Shown piece after piece: positions 30,401-35,780 of a DNA stretch of 38,081 nucleotides; position 1 is the first letter of the stretch; each line of letters begins with the position of its first letter. Source of the DNA: Pelomyxa schiedti (taxonomy: Eukaryota; Protista; Evosea); NCBI GenBank assembly GCA_020536535.1, contig JAHLWZ010000959.1, positions 1 through 38,081 on the forward strand, in the 5' to 3' direction. A program made the translations under genes and the position numbers. The notes beneath the pieces were generated by a model that was not told where the DNA came from, did not search any database, and was given only the letters and a program-made list of their open reading frames with translations.

Positions 30401-33400
30401 GTTGCCCGGAAACATTCTCCTCTCCATTGCCATGAAAGTTTCTTTTTGCTATCAAAGAGTTACATGAATAATTTCTCTTACTTTCAGACCATCTATTCTC
30501 TGCCTTGTTATGGATACAGGCAGCGCATATTTCATCATTAGTTATGGCATGTGGCTGAAGCCTGTTGGTGATTATAATGTTGGGATACATTGCAGCCACA
30601 TCGACGTGCACGAGTGTAGGACACTCTTCACGCCTTGCCACCCGACCATCATCACTTACCCCAACGGAAGCGAGTTGATCAAGCAGGCGAGTTATGTCAC
30701 TGTGTACCTTCAAACTTTTGGTGAATTTCCCAGGGGTTACGGGATACAGATTAAAAAGAGTTCACCTCCGCCCGGTTTGAGATAGAGTTCGGATCTAAGT
30801 CAGCCTCTTTGGCTGCAAATAAAATCACTTCATCAACGTCAGCAATAAGCTGAGCATGAAACAGATTAAGCTGGGGTTGAAGGATAAAAAGTTATAAATT
30901 ACTTTTTTTATTGTGCCAACATCCAAGCGAAATCGAGTGGGAAGGTCACAGCGAAAGATGCCTGATGAGAAATTGTTGGTGTTGCACAAAGAAAATATGC
31001 GGTACCTGATTCTAAACTCTCGACATGACCACCAACATAGGTCTCACTATCCAAAAGATGGTCTTTATGAAATTGCACTGGATTTGATTTGTTTTTATTG
31101 GGGTAGATGATTTTGGCTTTATAGGCTTCCACCTTAAAACAAGTTACAACAAAAAAAGGGATCAAGAAAAAATACAAACCATAAGAAGATTTTCACACAG
31201 TGTGCCTGATCCCTTTCTGAGTACGTCATCAGGGTTTAGCGGGATGATTGTGCACAATGAGAATATGAAGGGGTATATGTGCTAGTGGGCATCAGTGGTT
31301 TCCCTCGAGAATGGAAAAAATCCATGAGATGCAACCTTGATAAAGAGATAATATGTTGAAACAGCATCAGATACTGAGTAGGAAGCAAGTTTGACAGGTT
31401 CTTCAGAGGCCAGGCGCGTCATATCTTCTGGGTCCAGTTCCAATGGGTCAAATCCAAGTTTTGCTTTTGTAACTGCCTTGAGAAAATTGAACCCAAGAAA
31501 TATGAAGGGAAAAACCAGTTAGAAAAAACTTCAGTGGTCATGTACAGGCTTACTTTTAAACCATGACTACCGTGGGGTAGGTAGCTATCCCGCTGCACCC
31601 AGCAGAAACAATCCAAGTGGGAGGAATAACGAGATGTGTAGCACTCCTCCTTTGCATTGAACTTCACACCAATGGCTTTTTCCATTGGCATCCCATTAAT
31701 TGTTGCTCGTGCATCAATGAAGGGCCAGTCAAAAAAGTCACCGTTGAATGTGACAAAAATCAGTGGTTTCACCTCAGCAATGTGATCAAAGAATCTCTTG
31801 AGAAGTGCTTTCTGTCAAACAAACAAACAAAAAAAAAAGCCTTCAATGTGCAGCTAAAGTGTTGAGATGCCTTGTTCACCTCATCAGGGGCATTGAAAAC
31901 TTGGAATGGTCCCTCATATTCAGGTCTGGGAGTAAACTCAAAATCTTCAATATCTTGGCTAACAATGCTCCGATTGATGATGAGGTGCCCCTGCCTGTTG
32001 AACATGTACGAAATCATCATTATTTGATCTGTTTCACTGTCGGGAAACTGTAAAAAAGGGAGTAGGTATTTGAAACTACTCCAAAGCAAAGAAATTGCCA
32101 GAGGGATGAGTGAATTACTTTGAGTGGCATCTTTGTTGTCTCAATATCAAATGCCAGAACAGAGAGATCTGGACGTTTGGAGACCATTTGCGGGCATCCC
32201 GAGAGTTGGAGGAGGCCTTCATCAAAGGAAATATTGTACCACGTCCCAGAACGCAGATCTGTAGTGTTTAATTAATACTTGCTGCTACCAAGCCACCAAA
32301 TTGTCTCACCTTTGTCAATTGTAACTCTTGTGTAGTATGGGATATCATACTCCCTTATGTCATCAATGAACTGGAGATATGAAGATATATGCCGATTGCT
32401 TGAAGAACTACTGTAGAATCTTTGAGACAACCGTATAAAAACTGCAAGTCCTCACTCACCTGGTGGTTGAAAATGCATCATAAGCATGGGACATCTCTGT
32501 CCTCTGTTTGTTTGCTTGTATAATGGGGTCCAGTTCACTTCTTATGCGCACAAGAGTGGGAACTGCCAAAAAATTGACTTTCATGCATTTTTTCCTGAGT
32601 CCAGACAAGTGGTTTTTCTGGAAAAGCCCTGTGAGTGTGTGCAGTGAGTATCCCGGACCCTCGATACCAAGGTGAGGTCTTCTTTTTCCACACATTCCAT
32701 GCTCTCAATTGACGTTTCATAAGTCCTTCTGAGTTCAGCTTCAACTTCCCTGTAGTATTGCTCCTGGAGGAAGTAGTTTAACAATCTCTGTTAAGGTTTG
32801 AAAAAGGAACCTGCACAATCAAGTAGAAGTAAGGCATGAACAGCAGAGACACTTTGAATGTTTCTTTTGTGGAGCTGATGAAGTAACAATCTACAGCACT
32901 TCGAACTTTCAAAGCTTCATCATCTCGTAAAAGGGTCTGCGTCGGGAGATATCAATTTGAGGGGATGATGGCAATGTTGGAAAACACGCAGGAATCTCTT
33001 CTTTTGACACACAACACCAAGGAGGGAGCAGCATTTGGTACACACTGGGTGAACGTTCAACAGGTATCCAATCCTCGCATCGCCGGATGGGATTCTCGGA
33101 AACCCCATCAGCAAATCCACCTTGTCTTCCTCAGCCACCTTCAGCAGCAATCTTTGGGTGGCCTCATCACCAACACCCCCACTTCCACCACCTCCTCCTC
33201 GTCCCACAGAGCCACCGGACGACGGCTGCGTCGTTGCGCGTGTGGATCTCGTCCATTTCGCCCTTCCTCTCCCGAAACTCCCGATTGGTCCCGTCTTTGA
33301 TGCTGTGGCTCCCCTCCCTCCTCCACCCCTCCCTGCACCCCCACCTCCTCCTTTGTAGATCCCCCCCGCACCCCTCGTGCCGTGTGAAGAAACGAATGGT

Positions 33401-33571
33401 GAAGATCTGCCACGTCCCCACTGCGGCTTGTTGGTCGTCGTTGCCCCTGCAGTTTTGTTTGCATTAATGAGCCAAATGGAAAAAAGAAACGCCAACACCT
33501 TGCTTTGTGGGGCAATTTTGAGCATAGTGGCCCACAGCACCACACGAGTAGCACGTGTTCGTGTTTGACAT
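24496..33571 (-). CDS. POLE: DNA polymerase epsilon catalytic subunit, dozens of short introns
   Basis: Exo [10 protein letters not shown], Exo [23 protein letters not shown], motif [11 protein letters not shown], motif [15 protein letters not shown], motif [25 protein letters not shown]-terminal CSYCNDC and QDLYCKEC Cys motifs. Ends WLLDT*. Confidence 0.97.
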
Positions 33572-33821: not shown

Positions 33822-35780
33822 ATGTCAGACAGGGAGGCTATCGAACACAACGAGTCCCTACCCAACGCTTCAGCAGCGGTAACACCCGAAGCTCTAAATC
33901 GCGAGGACACCGAGGCAGAACCACACGACAATCCAGATAACGAGGTACTCTCTTCACCGCCACAACATCAACAACTTCCCCCCAGTCGCGTGTGGCAGAG
34001 CGCCGCCCACTTGATCTGGTATCTGTCCATCGTCGTAACCCTAGAACGTCGCGCAGAGGAGCGTGGGCGACTCGTTGTACAAGAATCAAGTACCTCCCAC
34101 GAGATTGTTGAGCACACAACGGTACAGCAGGATCACGAACGGAATCATAACGAGAACCCTCCTGTGCGTGAGGGAGTGACAGGAGGGGGGAGGGGGGAGG
34201 AGGTACGAGAGGGGCACTCCTACCCCCCCGTTCCCGCCCCTTCCTCCCTCTCCTCCCTCTCCTCCCATTCCCCCCATCAACATAAACGTGAACATGACCA
34301 CCAACACACCCATAACCGCAAACATTGTCAGAAGCGAGGGGCACAATACAGCGAGAGTCAAGTGCGGAAAATGGCTCTTAGGGATCCCACTGTCTGGGAG
34401 TGGTTGTCCCCTGGGAGGGGCGAAGTTGTAAAGAGTGTGGAAGTTCAAGCCACCCACCCCCTTTGCGCACACCCTGTCACAATTTATGTGGATTTGGTGC
34501 GGAGTTCTGACAACCCATCCAAGATCATTCCGCTGTGTCAGGGTGATATATATGTACCCCTACGCTGCTTGAATGGAGTGCAATTCGATGAGGGAAGTGC
34601 TGACGCCTCTGAGTTCTCTTTTGGGGGCTCTGTGGAAATGGGAAATCTCTGGCCGGATGGAGTGTGGTATTATTGTCTCGACCTGGATAGTCTCACACCT
34701 AGGCAGAGAGAGCAGCTGGAACTGCAGATAGCAGAGACCTGTAGGACTTCTGATCAAGCTATAATTTTGGAGGAGATGGAGAAAGTTCGATTGACGGACT
34801 CACAAAAGTCGACCATCAGAGAGGGCATCAGGCTCATCACCGAGTACCAACAATCAGTGAGAATTCTAGAGCAACCAACTGACATTCCTGAGGCTCCTCA
34901 CTGTGTGATTTTTGTTAACGAGGAACGTTCATGGAGCCTGATCGGGATGTGTGGCCTAATTCAGAGAATTGCCGTGATGAAATCTTCTCCTGCCGGAAGT
35001 GTGGCTCACGAAATTCTGCACAGTCTTGGATTCTACCATACGCAAAGCCGCTATGACAGAGACAGCTATATCAGAATTGACTTTAGCAATATTCAACCGA
35101 AAAAAGAGCTCAACTTCACTATGCACGCAGATGCACTGGATGTAAAGCAGTACGATTACTCTTCCATCATGCACTATGGGGCTTATGCTTTTGCCCTCAA
35201 CAAGAAAGAGAAGACTATTTATGTCCTTGATGGGGTCAAGCAGGAAATTGGGCAGCGCGATGCTCTCAGCGCTGGTGACTTAGCTTCCCTGGCTACACTC
35301 TACCCAGGAACCGTAAAGTGTACATTTGGTGCCACGGCCAAGGAATTCAAGCAGCAGGCTTGGTTCAAGTGCATGACTTGCTGGGGAGAAGGGCGCTACG
35401 GCTGCTGCATGGCCTGCTCATTGGATTGCCACCGAGGTCATACAATAGTTTCAATGCCCCCAATGGCTTCCTACTGTGATTGCGGTGCATGCAGCCACCG
35501 CTACAAGTGCACACGATTTACATCAGACCAAAGGAAAGTGGTGCAGCCCGCAGCATCCTCAGTGGATGGCACCTTGGTGTGTGTACACTGCTACAGGTTG
35601 TGTCCCCGGCATCGCCCCAGATACCCAGAATCCACATTTCCGGTAAAGGAGTTCTGTTGCAGCTGCACCTGTTCTGGTGGTGATGAAGAACAAAACCCTT
35701 CATTCCAAGCAGAGGTGGTCAAGCACATGGATGTTATTGATTCAACTCCAACTGCCTCTGGAGGGTGTGTGCTGTGTTGA
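33822..35780 (+). CDS. Astacin-family (M12A) zinc metalloprotease with C-terminal UBR-type zinc finger(s) and CaaX-like end
   Basis: QGDI pro-motif, LWPDG, HEILHSLGFYHTQSRYDRD (from 35007), YDYSSIMHY Met-turn, IGQRDALS. Then CTF...QAWFKCMTC...CCMACSLDCHRGH...YCDCG. Ends GGCVLC*. One continuous ORF. Confidence 0.9.
   Translation: MSDREAIEHNESLPNASAAVTPEALNREDTEAEPHDNPDNEVLSSPPQHQQLPPSRVWQSAAHLIWYLSIVVTLERRAEERGRLVVQESSTSHEIVEHTTVQQDHERNHNENPPVREGVTGGGRGEEVREGHSYPPVPAPSSLSSLSSHSPHQHKREHDHQHTHNRKHCQKRGAQYSESQVRKMALRDPTVWEWLSPGRGEVVKSVEVQATHPLCAHPVTIYVDLVRSSDNPSKIIPLCQGDIYVPLRCLNGVQFDEGSADASEFSFGGSVEMGNLWPDGVWYYCLDLDSLTPRQREQLELQIAETCRTSDQAIILEEMEKVRLTDSQKSTIREGIRLITEYQQSVRILEQPTDIPEAPHCVIFVNEERSWSLIGMCGLIQRIAVMKSSPAGSVAHEILHSLGFYHTQSRYDRDSYIRIDFSNIQPKKELNFTMHADALDVKQYDYSSIMHYGAYAFALNKKEKTIYVLDGVKQEIGQRDALSAGDLASLATLYPGTVKCTFGATAKEFKQQAWFKCMTCWGEGRYGCCMACSLDCHRGHTIVSMPPMASYCDCGACSHRYKCTRFTSDQRKVVQPAASSVDGTLVCVHCYRLCPRHRPRYPESTFPVKEFCCSCTCSGGDEEQNPSFQAEVVKHMDVIDSTPTASGGCVLC

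Follow-up and report, generated by a model that had tools for sequence, protein, structure and literature searches.

The protist Pelomyxa schiedti carries, in a 38,081-nucleotide stretch of contig JAHLWZ010000959.1 (assembly GCA_020536535.1; here called the window), a gene whose product joins an astacin metalloprotease domain to a UBR4-like UBR box and ends in the CaaX-type motif CVLC. The gene occupies positions 33822..35780 of the + strand as an uninterrupted open reading frame (ORF) of 652 codons followed by a stop; coordinates below refer to the window and, unless noted, to this strand. Taken as a whole, the evidence is best explained, at somewhat better than even probability, by a zymogen astacin that would be tethered to a membrane, facing the cytosol, and would perform N-terminus-guided cleavage of proteins docked at its UBR box. 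A six-frame search of the genome (52,367,397 bases in 5337 contigs) returned nine astacin matches. Five of these run as long frames without interruption and share a pro-astacin-UBR core: the window gene, L001 (C1764), L003 (C1149), L004 (C222), and L005 (C24), with products of 595 to 835 amino acids (aa). These are referred to below as the five paralogues.

An astacin protease without the family's secretory features

The catalytic domain spans aa 276-496 (34647..35309) and starts with LWPDG. Pfam Astacin (PF01400) matched aa 324-494 with an E value of 3.8e-33 and 115.2 bits against a gathering threshold of 22.5, and sequence matches of the protease in PDB were hatching enzymes, astacin, BMP1, and meprins (E values of 1e-22 to 1e-16). 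In an AlphaFold2 model of aa 185-495, the predicted local distance difference test (pLDDT) score was above 90 over the catalytic domain. Foldseek aligned the catalytic model with 3VTG, 1AST, and 3EDH at template modeling (TM) scores of 0.82-0.86 (0.84-0.86 for astacin and hatching enzymes), with E values of 1e-15 to 1e-16 and root mean square deviations (RMSD) of 1.8-2.7 Å. A helical insertion of ~43 aa (34686-34814) lies in the N-terminal subdomain of the catalytic domain. A preliminary description of the gene, made from its sequence, had called the HExxHxxGxxH and SIMHY motifs intact, and they are: the zinc motif HEILHSLGFYH (aa 396-406), followed by TQSRYDRD (together 35007-35063), includes the catalytic Glu, the Met-turn SIMHY (aa 448-452; 35163-35177) includes the Tyr ligand, and both are invariant among the five paralogues.

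All characterised astacins are extracellular and have a signal peptide, and in known astacins the mature N terminus is bound by a Glu specific to the family (Gomis-Ruth and Stocker 2023, PMC9848320). The Pelomyxa proteins differ from this pattern. The Glu that should follow the third His is Thr (HTQSRYDRD) in all five paralogues, with RxDRD kept. The preliminary description had also held that the usual disulfide cysteines are replaced. This was borne out in a 40-sequence alignment, in which the classical astacins mostly have Cys at the astacin C42, C64, and C84 positions, whereas the equivalents in the window protein are Ser, Ser, and a non-Cys residue. None of 16 UBR-fused astacins has the Cys before HE that forms part of the C64-C84 disulfide, and nearly all of them lack C42; across the pro and catalytic parts of the paralogues, just one Cys is invariant. 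Judged by its sequence, then, the window protein departs from the astacin family definition in having no signal peptide (see below), no family Glu, and no disulfide cysteines.

The catalytic domain is preceded by a conserved pro-region (aa 188-275; 34383..34646) that contains CQGDI (34536-34550), 35 residues ahead of LWPDG. All five paralogues keep the Asp of this motif (aa 242), which in the others reads TEGDI, IWGDV, or HHDI. FXGDI is the sole motif common to the prosegments of animal astacins, and its Asp blocks the zinc in what is called an aspartate switch (PMC9848320). Because an FxGDI-like motif is kept as CQGDI, the protein is probably made as an aspartate-switch zymogen.

A UBR4-like UBR box in the C-terminal tail

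The tail contains a UBR box of the UBR4-like type, subfamily 2 (aa 499-566; 35316..35519), and a second, degenerate UBR-like Cys cluster (aa 585-619; 35574..35678). When the last 163 aa were scanned alone, Pfam zf-UBR (PF02207) matched with an E value of 5.6e-6 and 26.8 bits, just over the cutoff of 25.2. This match is marginal: zf-UBR was not listed in the Pfam scan of the full-length protein, and in the six-frame search of the organism's own genome the same profile scored 26.7 bits for this gene. Comparison with solved structures gave clear matches. As a single sequence, the tail matched UBR4 (8J9R) with an E value of 4e-9, plant BIG with 7e-8, and FBXO11 with 3e-5, and a profile of 17 family members matched UBR4 with 8.6e-13, FBXO11 with 2e-8, and UBR5 with 7e-7. 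An AlphaFold2 model of the tail had a pLDDT of about 80 in its ordered part, and the top Foldseek matches to it were all UBR boxes, the closest being that of UBR4 (8j9q/8j9r; TM score, 0.75; RMSD, 2.2-3.1 Å), with UBR5 and UBR6 at RMSD of 1.8-2.0 Å. With so short a domain, the E values of these fold matches stay modest, at about 2e-3. The Cys-rich tail is thus modelled as a UBR fold.

An ungapped alignment with UBR4 residues 1661-1719 pairs E508 and F509 with E1670 and F1671, Y551 with F1713, and D553 with D1715. The Cys and His ligands of the box are invariant and match the three-zinc ligand pattern; the Cys of the YKC motif presumably takes the position of UBR4 C1724. In UBR4, D1715 and the carbonyl of F1713 grip the alpha-amino group of the ligand, F1671 and F1713 stack against aromatic or Arg first residues, and F1671 is specific to UBR4 (Jeong et al. 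2023, PMC10687169). The D1715 equivalent is at least 90% conserved in the family alignment, with His in L001 only, and 12 of 17 family members have Phe or Tyr where UBR4 has F1671. About 35 tail residues, including Cys and His, are invariant in the five paralogues. By sequence and modelled fold, this is a real UBR4-like UBR box in which the ligand-contact residues are kept, and since they are kept, it is plausible that the box reads N termini.

The preliminary description had counted one full and one degenerate UBR-type finger, which is accurate. The relatives described below have a complete second UBR-like box, whose profile weakly matches the boxes of PRT6 and UBR2 (E values of 0.002-0.03). 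In the Pelomyxa second finger, one of the CxxC pairs is gone, as is the CH..H pair, so "degenerate" is a fair term for it.

Astacin-UBR proteins outside Pelomyxa

A profile of the five paralogues was compared with 1.84 billion representative sequences. Most matches were ordinary astacins, and at least 15 cluster representatives from outside Pelomyxa combine an astacin domain with one to six UBR boxes, as confirmed by Pfam. These include P0017, P0021, P0023, P0024, P0043, P0048, P0050, P0052, P0066, and P0069, as well as P0035, from a transcriptome of the sponge Oscarella pearsei. The search for this architecture that the preliminary description had proposed therefore found it well beyond Pelomyxa. 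One ciliate sequence, P0171 of Platyophrya macrostoma, lies near P0052, and its stored form has no UBR box; from this UBR-less relative we infer that ciliates belong to the clade. Two other searches were less productive. A word-index search with the tail alone matched only the window protein itself, and the clusters found by an Atlas feature search were all generic astacins, with scores no higher than 0.82.

The other astacin-UBR proteins resemble the window protein in domain order, in having no signal peptide, in loss of the disulfide cysteines, and in conservation of the UBR Asp. They differ in that they keep the family Glu, often have two to six complete boxes, and have neither a transmembrane segment nor a CaaX end. 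No signal-peptide-like or transmembrane segment was found in any of the 15 non-Pelomyxa proteins, two of which start with MGxxxS. The tails of P0043, P0052, and P0066 are the closest to the Pelomyxa tail, and no group but this one shares the Pelomyxa-type tail ending. P0069 has a Pfam ubiquitin domain ahead of its astacin and UBR domains. Together, these sequences appear to define an uncharacterised clade of eukaryotic astacins (M12A) that has lost secretory features and gained C-terminal UBR4-type boxes.

UBR boxes were also found in other settings. P0042, from Pyxidicula operculata, has five of them with a RING finger, and P0013 is a 1423-aa protein consisting of an array of 20 tandem UBR boxes and nothing else. 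Some protists thus seem to use tandem UBR-box arrays as a modular unit. The architectures of P0042, the astacin-UBR proteins, and P0013 place the same reader module with a ligase, with a protease, or alone.

Gene structure and Pelomyxa paralogues

The start at 33822 is the first in-frame ATG, and a stop codon closes the frame upstream of it. GenBank annotates the gene as P0001, "zinc metalloprotease [Pelomyxa schiedti]," a 587-aa protein with the same start as the 652-codon ORF. Relative to the open frame, P0001 lacks two in-frame pieces, both with GT..AG ends. The first is a low-complexity stretch (aa 128-170; 34203..34331) that the GenBank model treats as an intron. The second, 35597-35662 (66 bases), has codons for a Cys, a Phe, and another Cys, each of them invariant across the five paralogues, and because of this invariance the "intron" is very probably a gene-prediction error that removes coding sequence of the second finger. 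The GenBank model of the paralogue L001, P0014, leaves the conserved frame at the same place. All searches made with the window gene used the uninterrupted ORF or the GenBank protein.

The published single-cell assembly of P. schiedti has 5337 scaffolds that total 52.4 Mb, and its genes average 7.43 introns each (PMC8887013). For such a genome, five uninterrupted astacin-UBR paralogues are unusual, which hints at retroposition, or at recent acquisition followed by duplication. In a quick tree of the catalytic domain, the Pelomyxa proteins grouped together with 98% support. Contamination or a bacterial origin was considered and ruled out; the contig has eukaryotic open frames, and the genome agrees in length and contig count with the published assembly.

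The intronless structure, set against 7.43 introns per gene, and the loss of the family-specific Glu could also be taken to mean that the gene is nonfunctional, for instance a decaying retrocopy, or a product of faulty annotation or assembly; its protease might then be inactive. We consider this very improbable. The frame stays open for 652 codons, the zinc ligands, catalytic Glu, and Met-turn are all intact, the catalytic domain is modelled at a pLDDT above 90, and some 35 tail residues are invariant across the paralogues. Moreover, the ratio of nonsynonymous to synonymous substitution rates (dN/dS) is ~0.10 between the window gene and L005, a pair for which dS is saturated, and 0.27 between L001 and L003. 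On these values, the astacin-UBR genes are under purifying selection, as estimated from their sequences.

Three further observations concern neighbouring or related sequences. A 207-aa ORF at 32920-33543 on the - strand, Gly/Arg-rich and RGG-like, is divergent from the astacin gene and lies ~280 bp upstream of its start. In L003 (L003:463-1134:-), the frame runs ~220 aa past the second finger, and no Pfam match was found in that extension. Among the remaining astacin matches in the genome is L006 (G000:C1024), whose frame from locus position 1072 encodes a signal-peptide-less astacin (Pfam E value, 6e-19). Its tail is different, a repeated C-terminal module rich in Cys and His to which nothing in Pfam corresponds, and the protein may represent another type of intracellular astacin.

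Predicted intracellular location

As the preliminary description had stated, the N terminus is acidic and has no signal peptide. By hydropathy and charge, aa 1-56 (33822..33989) have a net charge of -9 and no h-region, and the best 8-residue Kyte-Doolittle average within the first 35 aa is 0.95. Pfam scans of aa 1-323 and of the N-terminal portion of L004 gave no match. Residues 57-75 (33990..34046), followed by ERRAEERGR, form a weak hydrophobic stretch with a 19-residue Kyte-Doolittle value (KD19) of 1.11, below the usual transmembrane threshold. Its position is equivalent to that of a strong N-terminal transmembrane helix (KD19, 2.86) in L005, the product of which is 63% identical to the window protein, and it may be a marginal or decayed anchor. 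Its homology with the L005 helix is supported by position only, because in a BLAST comparison with L005 the first 190 aa gave no significant match apart from a DPTV motif.

Three paralogues have strong transmembrane helices, with KD19 values of 2.5-3.1 over L001, L003, and L005; in L001 and L003 the helix follows an N-tail of 8 residues. The net charges flanking these helices in L001, L003, and L005 are +2, +2, and +4 on the C-terminal side and -1, 0, and +1 on the N-terminal side. Under the charge-difference, or positive-inside, rule, the more positive flank is cytosolic. From the more positive C-terminal flank, the rule predicts an N-out/C-in orientation for all three anchors, with the protease in the cytosol.

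The window protein itself ends, as had been described, in CVLC (35766..35777), after a C-terminal linker of low confidence that is likely disordered (aa 620-648; 35679..35765; pLDDT below 50). L005 has nearly the same ending (SGGCVLC in the window protein and SGGCLLC in L005). Cys at the X position of a CaaX box is a farnesyltransferase signal. The genome has three loci matching the Prenyltrans beta family, three matching the PPTA alpha family, and ICMT and Rce1-like matches. Because the hydrophobic stretch of the window protein is below threshold, the CaaX end is its main predicted anchor, and there is moderate support for the protein being prenylated or otherwise membrane-tethered on the cytosolic face.

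In a competing reading, the protein is a conventional astacin located outside the cell or in a lumen, given that every characterised member of the family is extracellular (PMC9848320). It would enter the secretory pathway by way of an unannotated exon farther upstream or a type II anchor, or leave by unconventional secretion, and its Cys-rich tail would be an extracellular module; the hydrophobic anchors of the paralogues could in principle serve as type II signal anchors, and the gene models of this draft genome are imperfect. Against this reading, a stop codon precedes the first ATG, the divergent frame at 32920-33543 lies ~280 bp upstream, and GenBank chose the same start. There is no h-region, and the charges flanking the transmembrane helices predict C-in rather than C-out. 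The disulfide cysteines have been lost across the family, a ubiquitin domain precedes the protease in one relative, and the CaaX end is conserved in two paralogues. To our knowledge, UBR boxes are found only in cytosolic or nuclear proteins, which also counts against an extracellular tail. We therefore regard an extracellular or lumenal enzyme as improbable.

The protein is instead quite likely intracellular. This reading draws on the family-wide disappearance of the signal peptide and disulfide cysteines, the ubiquitin domain fused ahead of the protease in one relative, the conservation of the zinc fingers, the CaaX end common to the window protein and L005, the charge asymmetry at the paralogue anchors, which predicts a cytosolic C-terminal side, and the presence of prenylation enzymes in the genome. 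The preliminary description had proposed an intracellular, membrane-anchored metalloprotease; its architecture and intracellular location are now supported by these several independent lines, all of them indirect.

Proposed mechanism and alternatives

We propose that the protein would be synthesized in the cytosol as an aspartate-switch zymogen. Farnesylation at CVLC would hold it on the cytosolic face of a membrane, possibly aided by aa 57-75, while its paralogues would be anchored by an N-out/C-in signal anchor and L005 by anchors of both types. Once activated, the enzyme would cleave substrates docked by the UBR box through their exposed N termini. The outcome would be protease-coupled, ubiquitin-independent, N-terminus-guided cleavage. 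The docking step, in which the UBR box would present substrate N termini for direct cleavage, is the most tentative element, and we hold it to be plausible but short of probable.

Several observations weigh against parts of this proposal. Farnesylation of CVLC, with Cys as X, is a prediction from the motif, and the protein's own hydrophobic stretch is below threshold. In the AlphaFold2 model, the prosegment has a pLDDT below 50 at model residues 56-89 and is not docked in the cleft, and because confidence is low over the CQGDI segment, we infer the zymogen state rather than read it from the model. Because the Pelomyxa proteins are without the family-specific Glu, they may mature in another way than known astacins do. 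Conserved contact residues are necessary for N-degron binding and are not sufficient for it. The UBR boxes of UBR3, UBR6, and UBR7 are reported as not binding N-degrons, and in paralogue L001 the key Asp is replaced by His. Finally, the quick catalytic-domain tree is compatible with either a single origin or several origins of the fusion.

The points that concern the UBR box feed an alternative in which the astacin is intracellular and its UBR module does not select N-degrons, acting instead as a zinc-stabilised structural substitute for the disulfides, as a general protein-protein docking domain, or in autoregulation. The UBR-box proteins reported as non-binding and the His of L001 favour it, and the large number of boxes in some proteins (up to six in relatives and 20 in UBR-only arrays) may suggest a generic scaffold. 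The structural and autoregulatory variants are serious alternatives. In the autoregulatory one, the box would bind the enzyme's own new N terminus after removal of the prosegment, which is worth weighing because the Glu that normally binds and buries the mature N terminus is missing in Pelomyxa, where Thr replaces it in every paralogue. Set against these points, the UBR4 contacts, including the UBR4-specific aromatic residue at 1671, are kept in the window protein and most of the family, and the other astacin-UBR proteins have both the Glu and UBR boxes. Because they keep the Glu, the UBR box is not a simple replacement for it. On balance, a UBR module that does not select N-degrons appears unlikely, though by no means negligible.

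N-terminus-guided cleavage can also be framed more boldly. In that form, the gene would encode a single-polypeptide "N-recognin protease" that captures an aromatic or basic N terminus and cleaves, independently of ubiquitin, at the cytosolic face of the membrane, as part of a modular protist system in which UBR arrays are wired to RING ligases or to proteases. Related UBR-box arrays are coupled to a RING finger in Pyxidicula, so the effector that accompanies this reader module is a ligase in some proteins and a protease in others. We regard this full version as speculative and rather doubtful.

Relation to known systems

The window protein shares with classical astacins (1AST, the hatching enzymes 3LQB and 3VTG, BMP1, and meprins; MEROPS M12A) the fold, HExxHxxGxxH, RxDRD, SIMHY, and an upstream xxGDI motif. 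It differs from them in having no signal peptide, disulfides, or family Glu, in adding the ~43-aa insertion, UBR boxes, and a CaaX end, and in its predicted cytosolic location. Meprin beta is likewise a membrane-tethered astacin, but one that acts as a type I ectoenzyme and has disulfides, a signal peptide, and MAM, TRAF, and EGF domains (PMC9848320), whereas the window protein is predicted to face the cytosol.

Its UBR box is about 40% identical, over 59 ungapped residues, to those of UBR4/p600 and plant BIG (8J9Q/8J9R and 9QT9), with which it shares the subfamily 2 Cys/His pattern, the equivalents of the contact residues, and the modelled fold (TM score, 0.75). In UBR4, the box is part of a 570-kDa E3/E4 ligase; here it sits on a 650-aa metalloprotease and is followed by a degenerate second box. 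Bacteria couple an N-degron adaptor to a protease in ClpS-ClpAP, and the ZZ domain of p62 directs N-degrons to autophagy. These systems resemble the proposed one by function only, in that N-terminal recognition feeds proteolysis without ubiquitin ligation (PMC11441550). The folds are unrelated, the Pelomyxa reader and protease would share one polypeptide, and this protease is an endopeptidase, unlike the unfoldase-driven chamber of ClpAP.

The preliminary description had called the gene the best candidate for an undescribed system, and this holds in part. The fusion is uncharacterised, but GenBank already has a generic annotation for the gene, and one review names ZF-UBR as an accessory domain of astacins, in a figure legend and a table legend only and with no discussion of function (Gomis-Ruth and Stocker 2023, PMC9848320). 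A search of the available literature library found the pairing of astacin with zf-UBR in that review only; it returned no paper pairing astacin with "UBR box," and the top-ranked N-degron papers were silent on astacin. What is new here is the paralogue family, the wider clade, the aspartate-switch-like motif, the loss of the family Glu, and the conservation of the residues by which UBR4 contacts N-degrons.

The reference review defines the astacin family by its signal peptide (PMC9848320), and a clade without one bears on that definition. If true, a cytosolic clade of astacins that has zinc fingers in place of disulfides and a UBR4-type N-degron reader would change the textbook picture of astacins as extracellular, disulfide-bonded enzymes. 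If, in addition, the UBR box docks N termini, this would be the first eukaryotic system in which recognition of an N terminus leads straight to a protease, in place of a ubiquitin ligase or an autophagy receptor.

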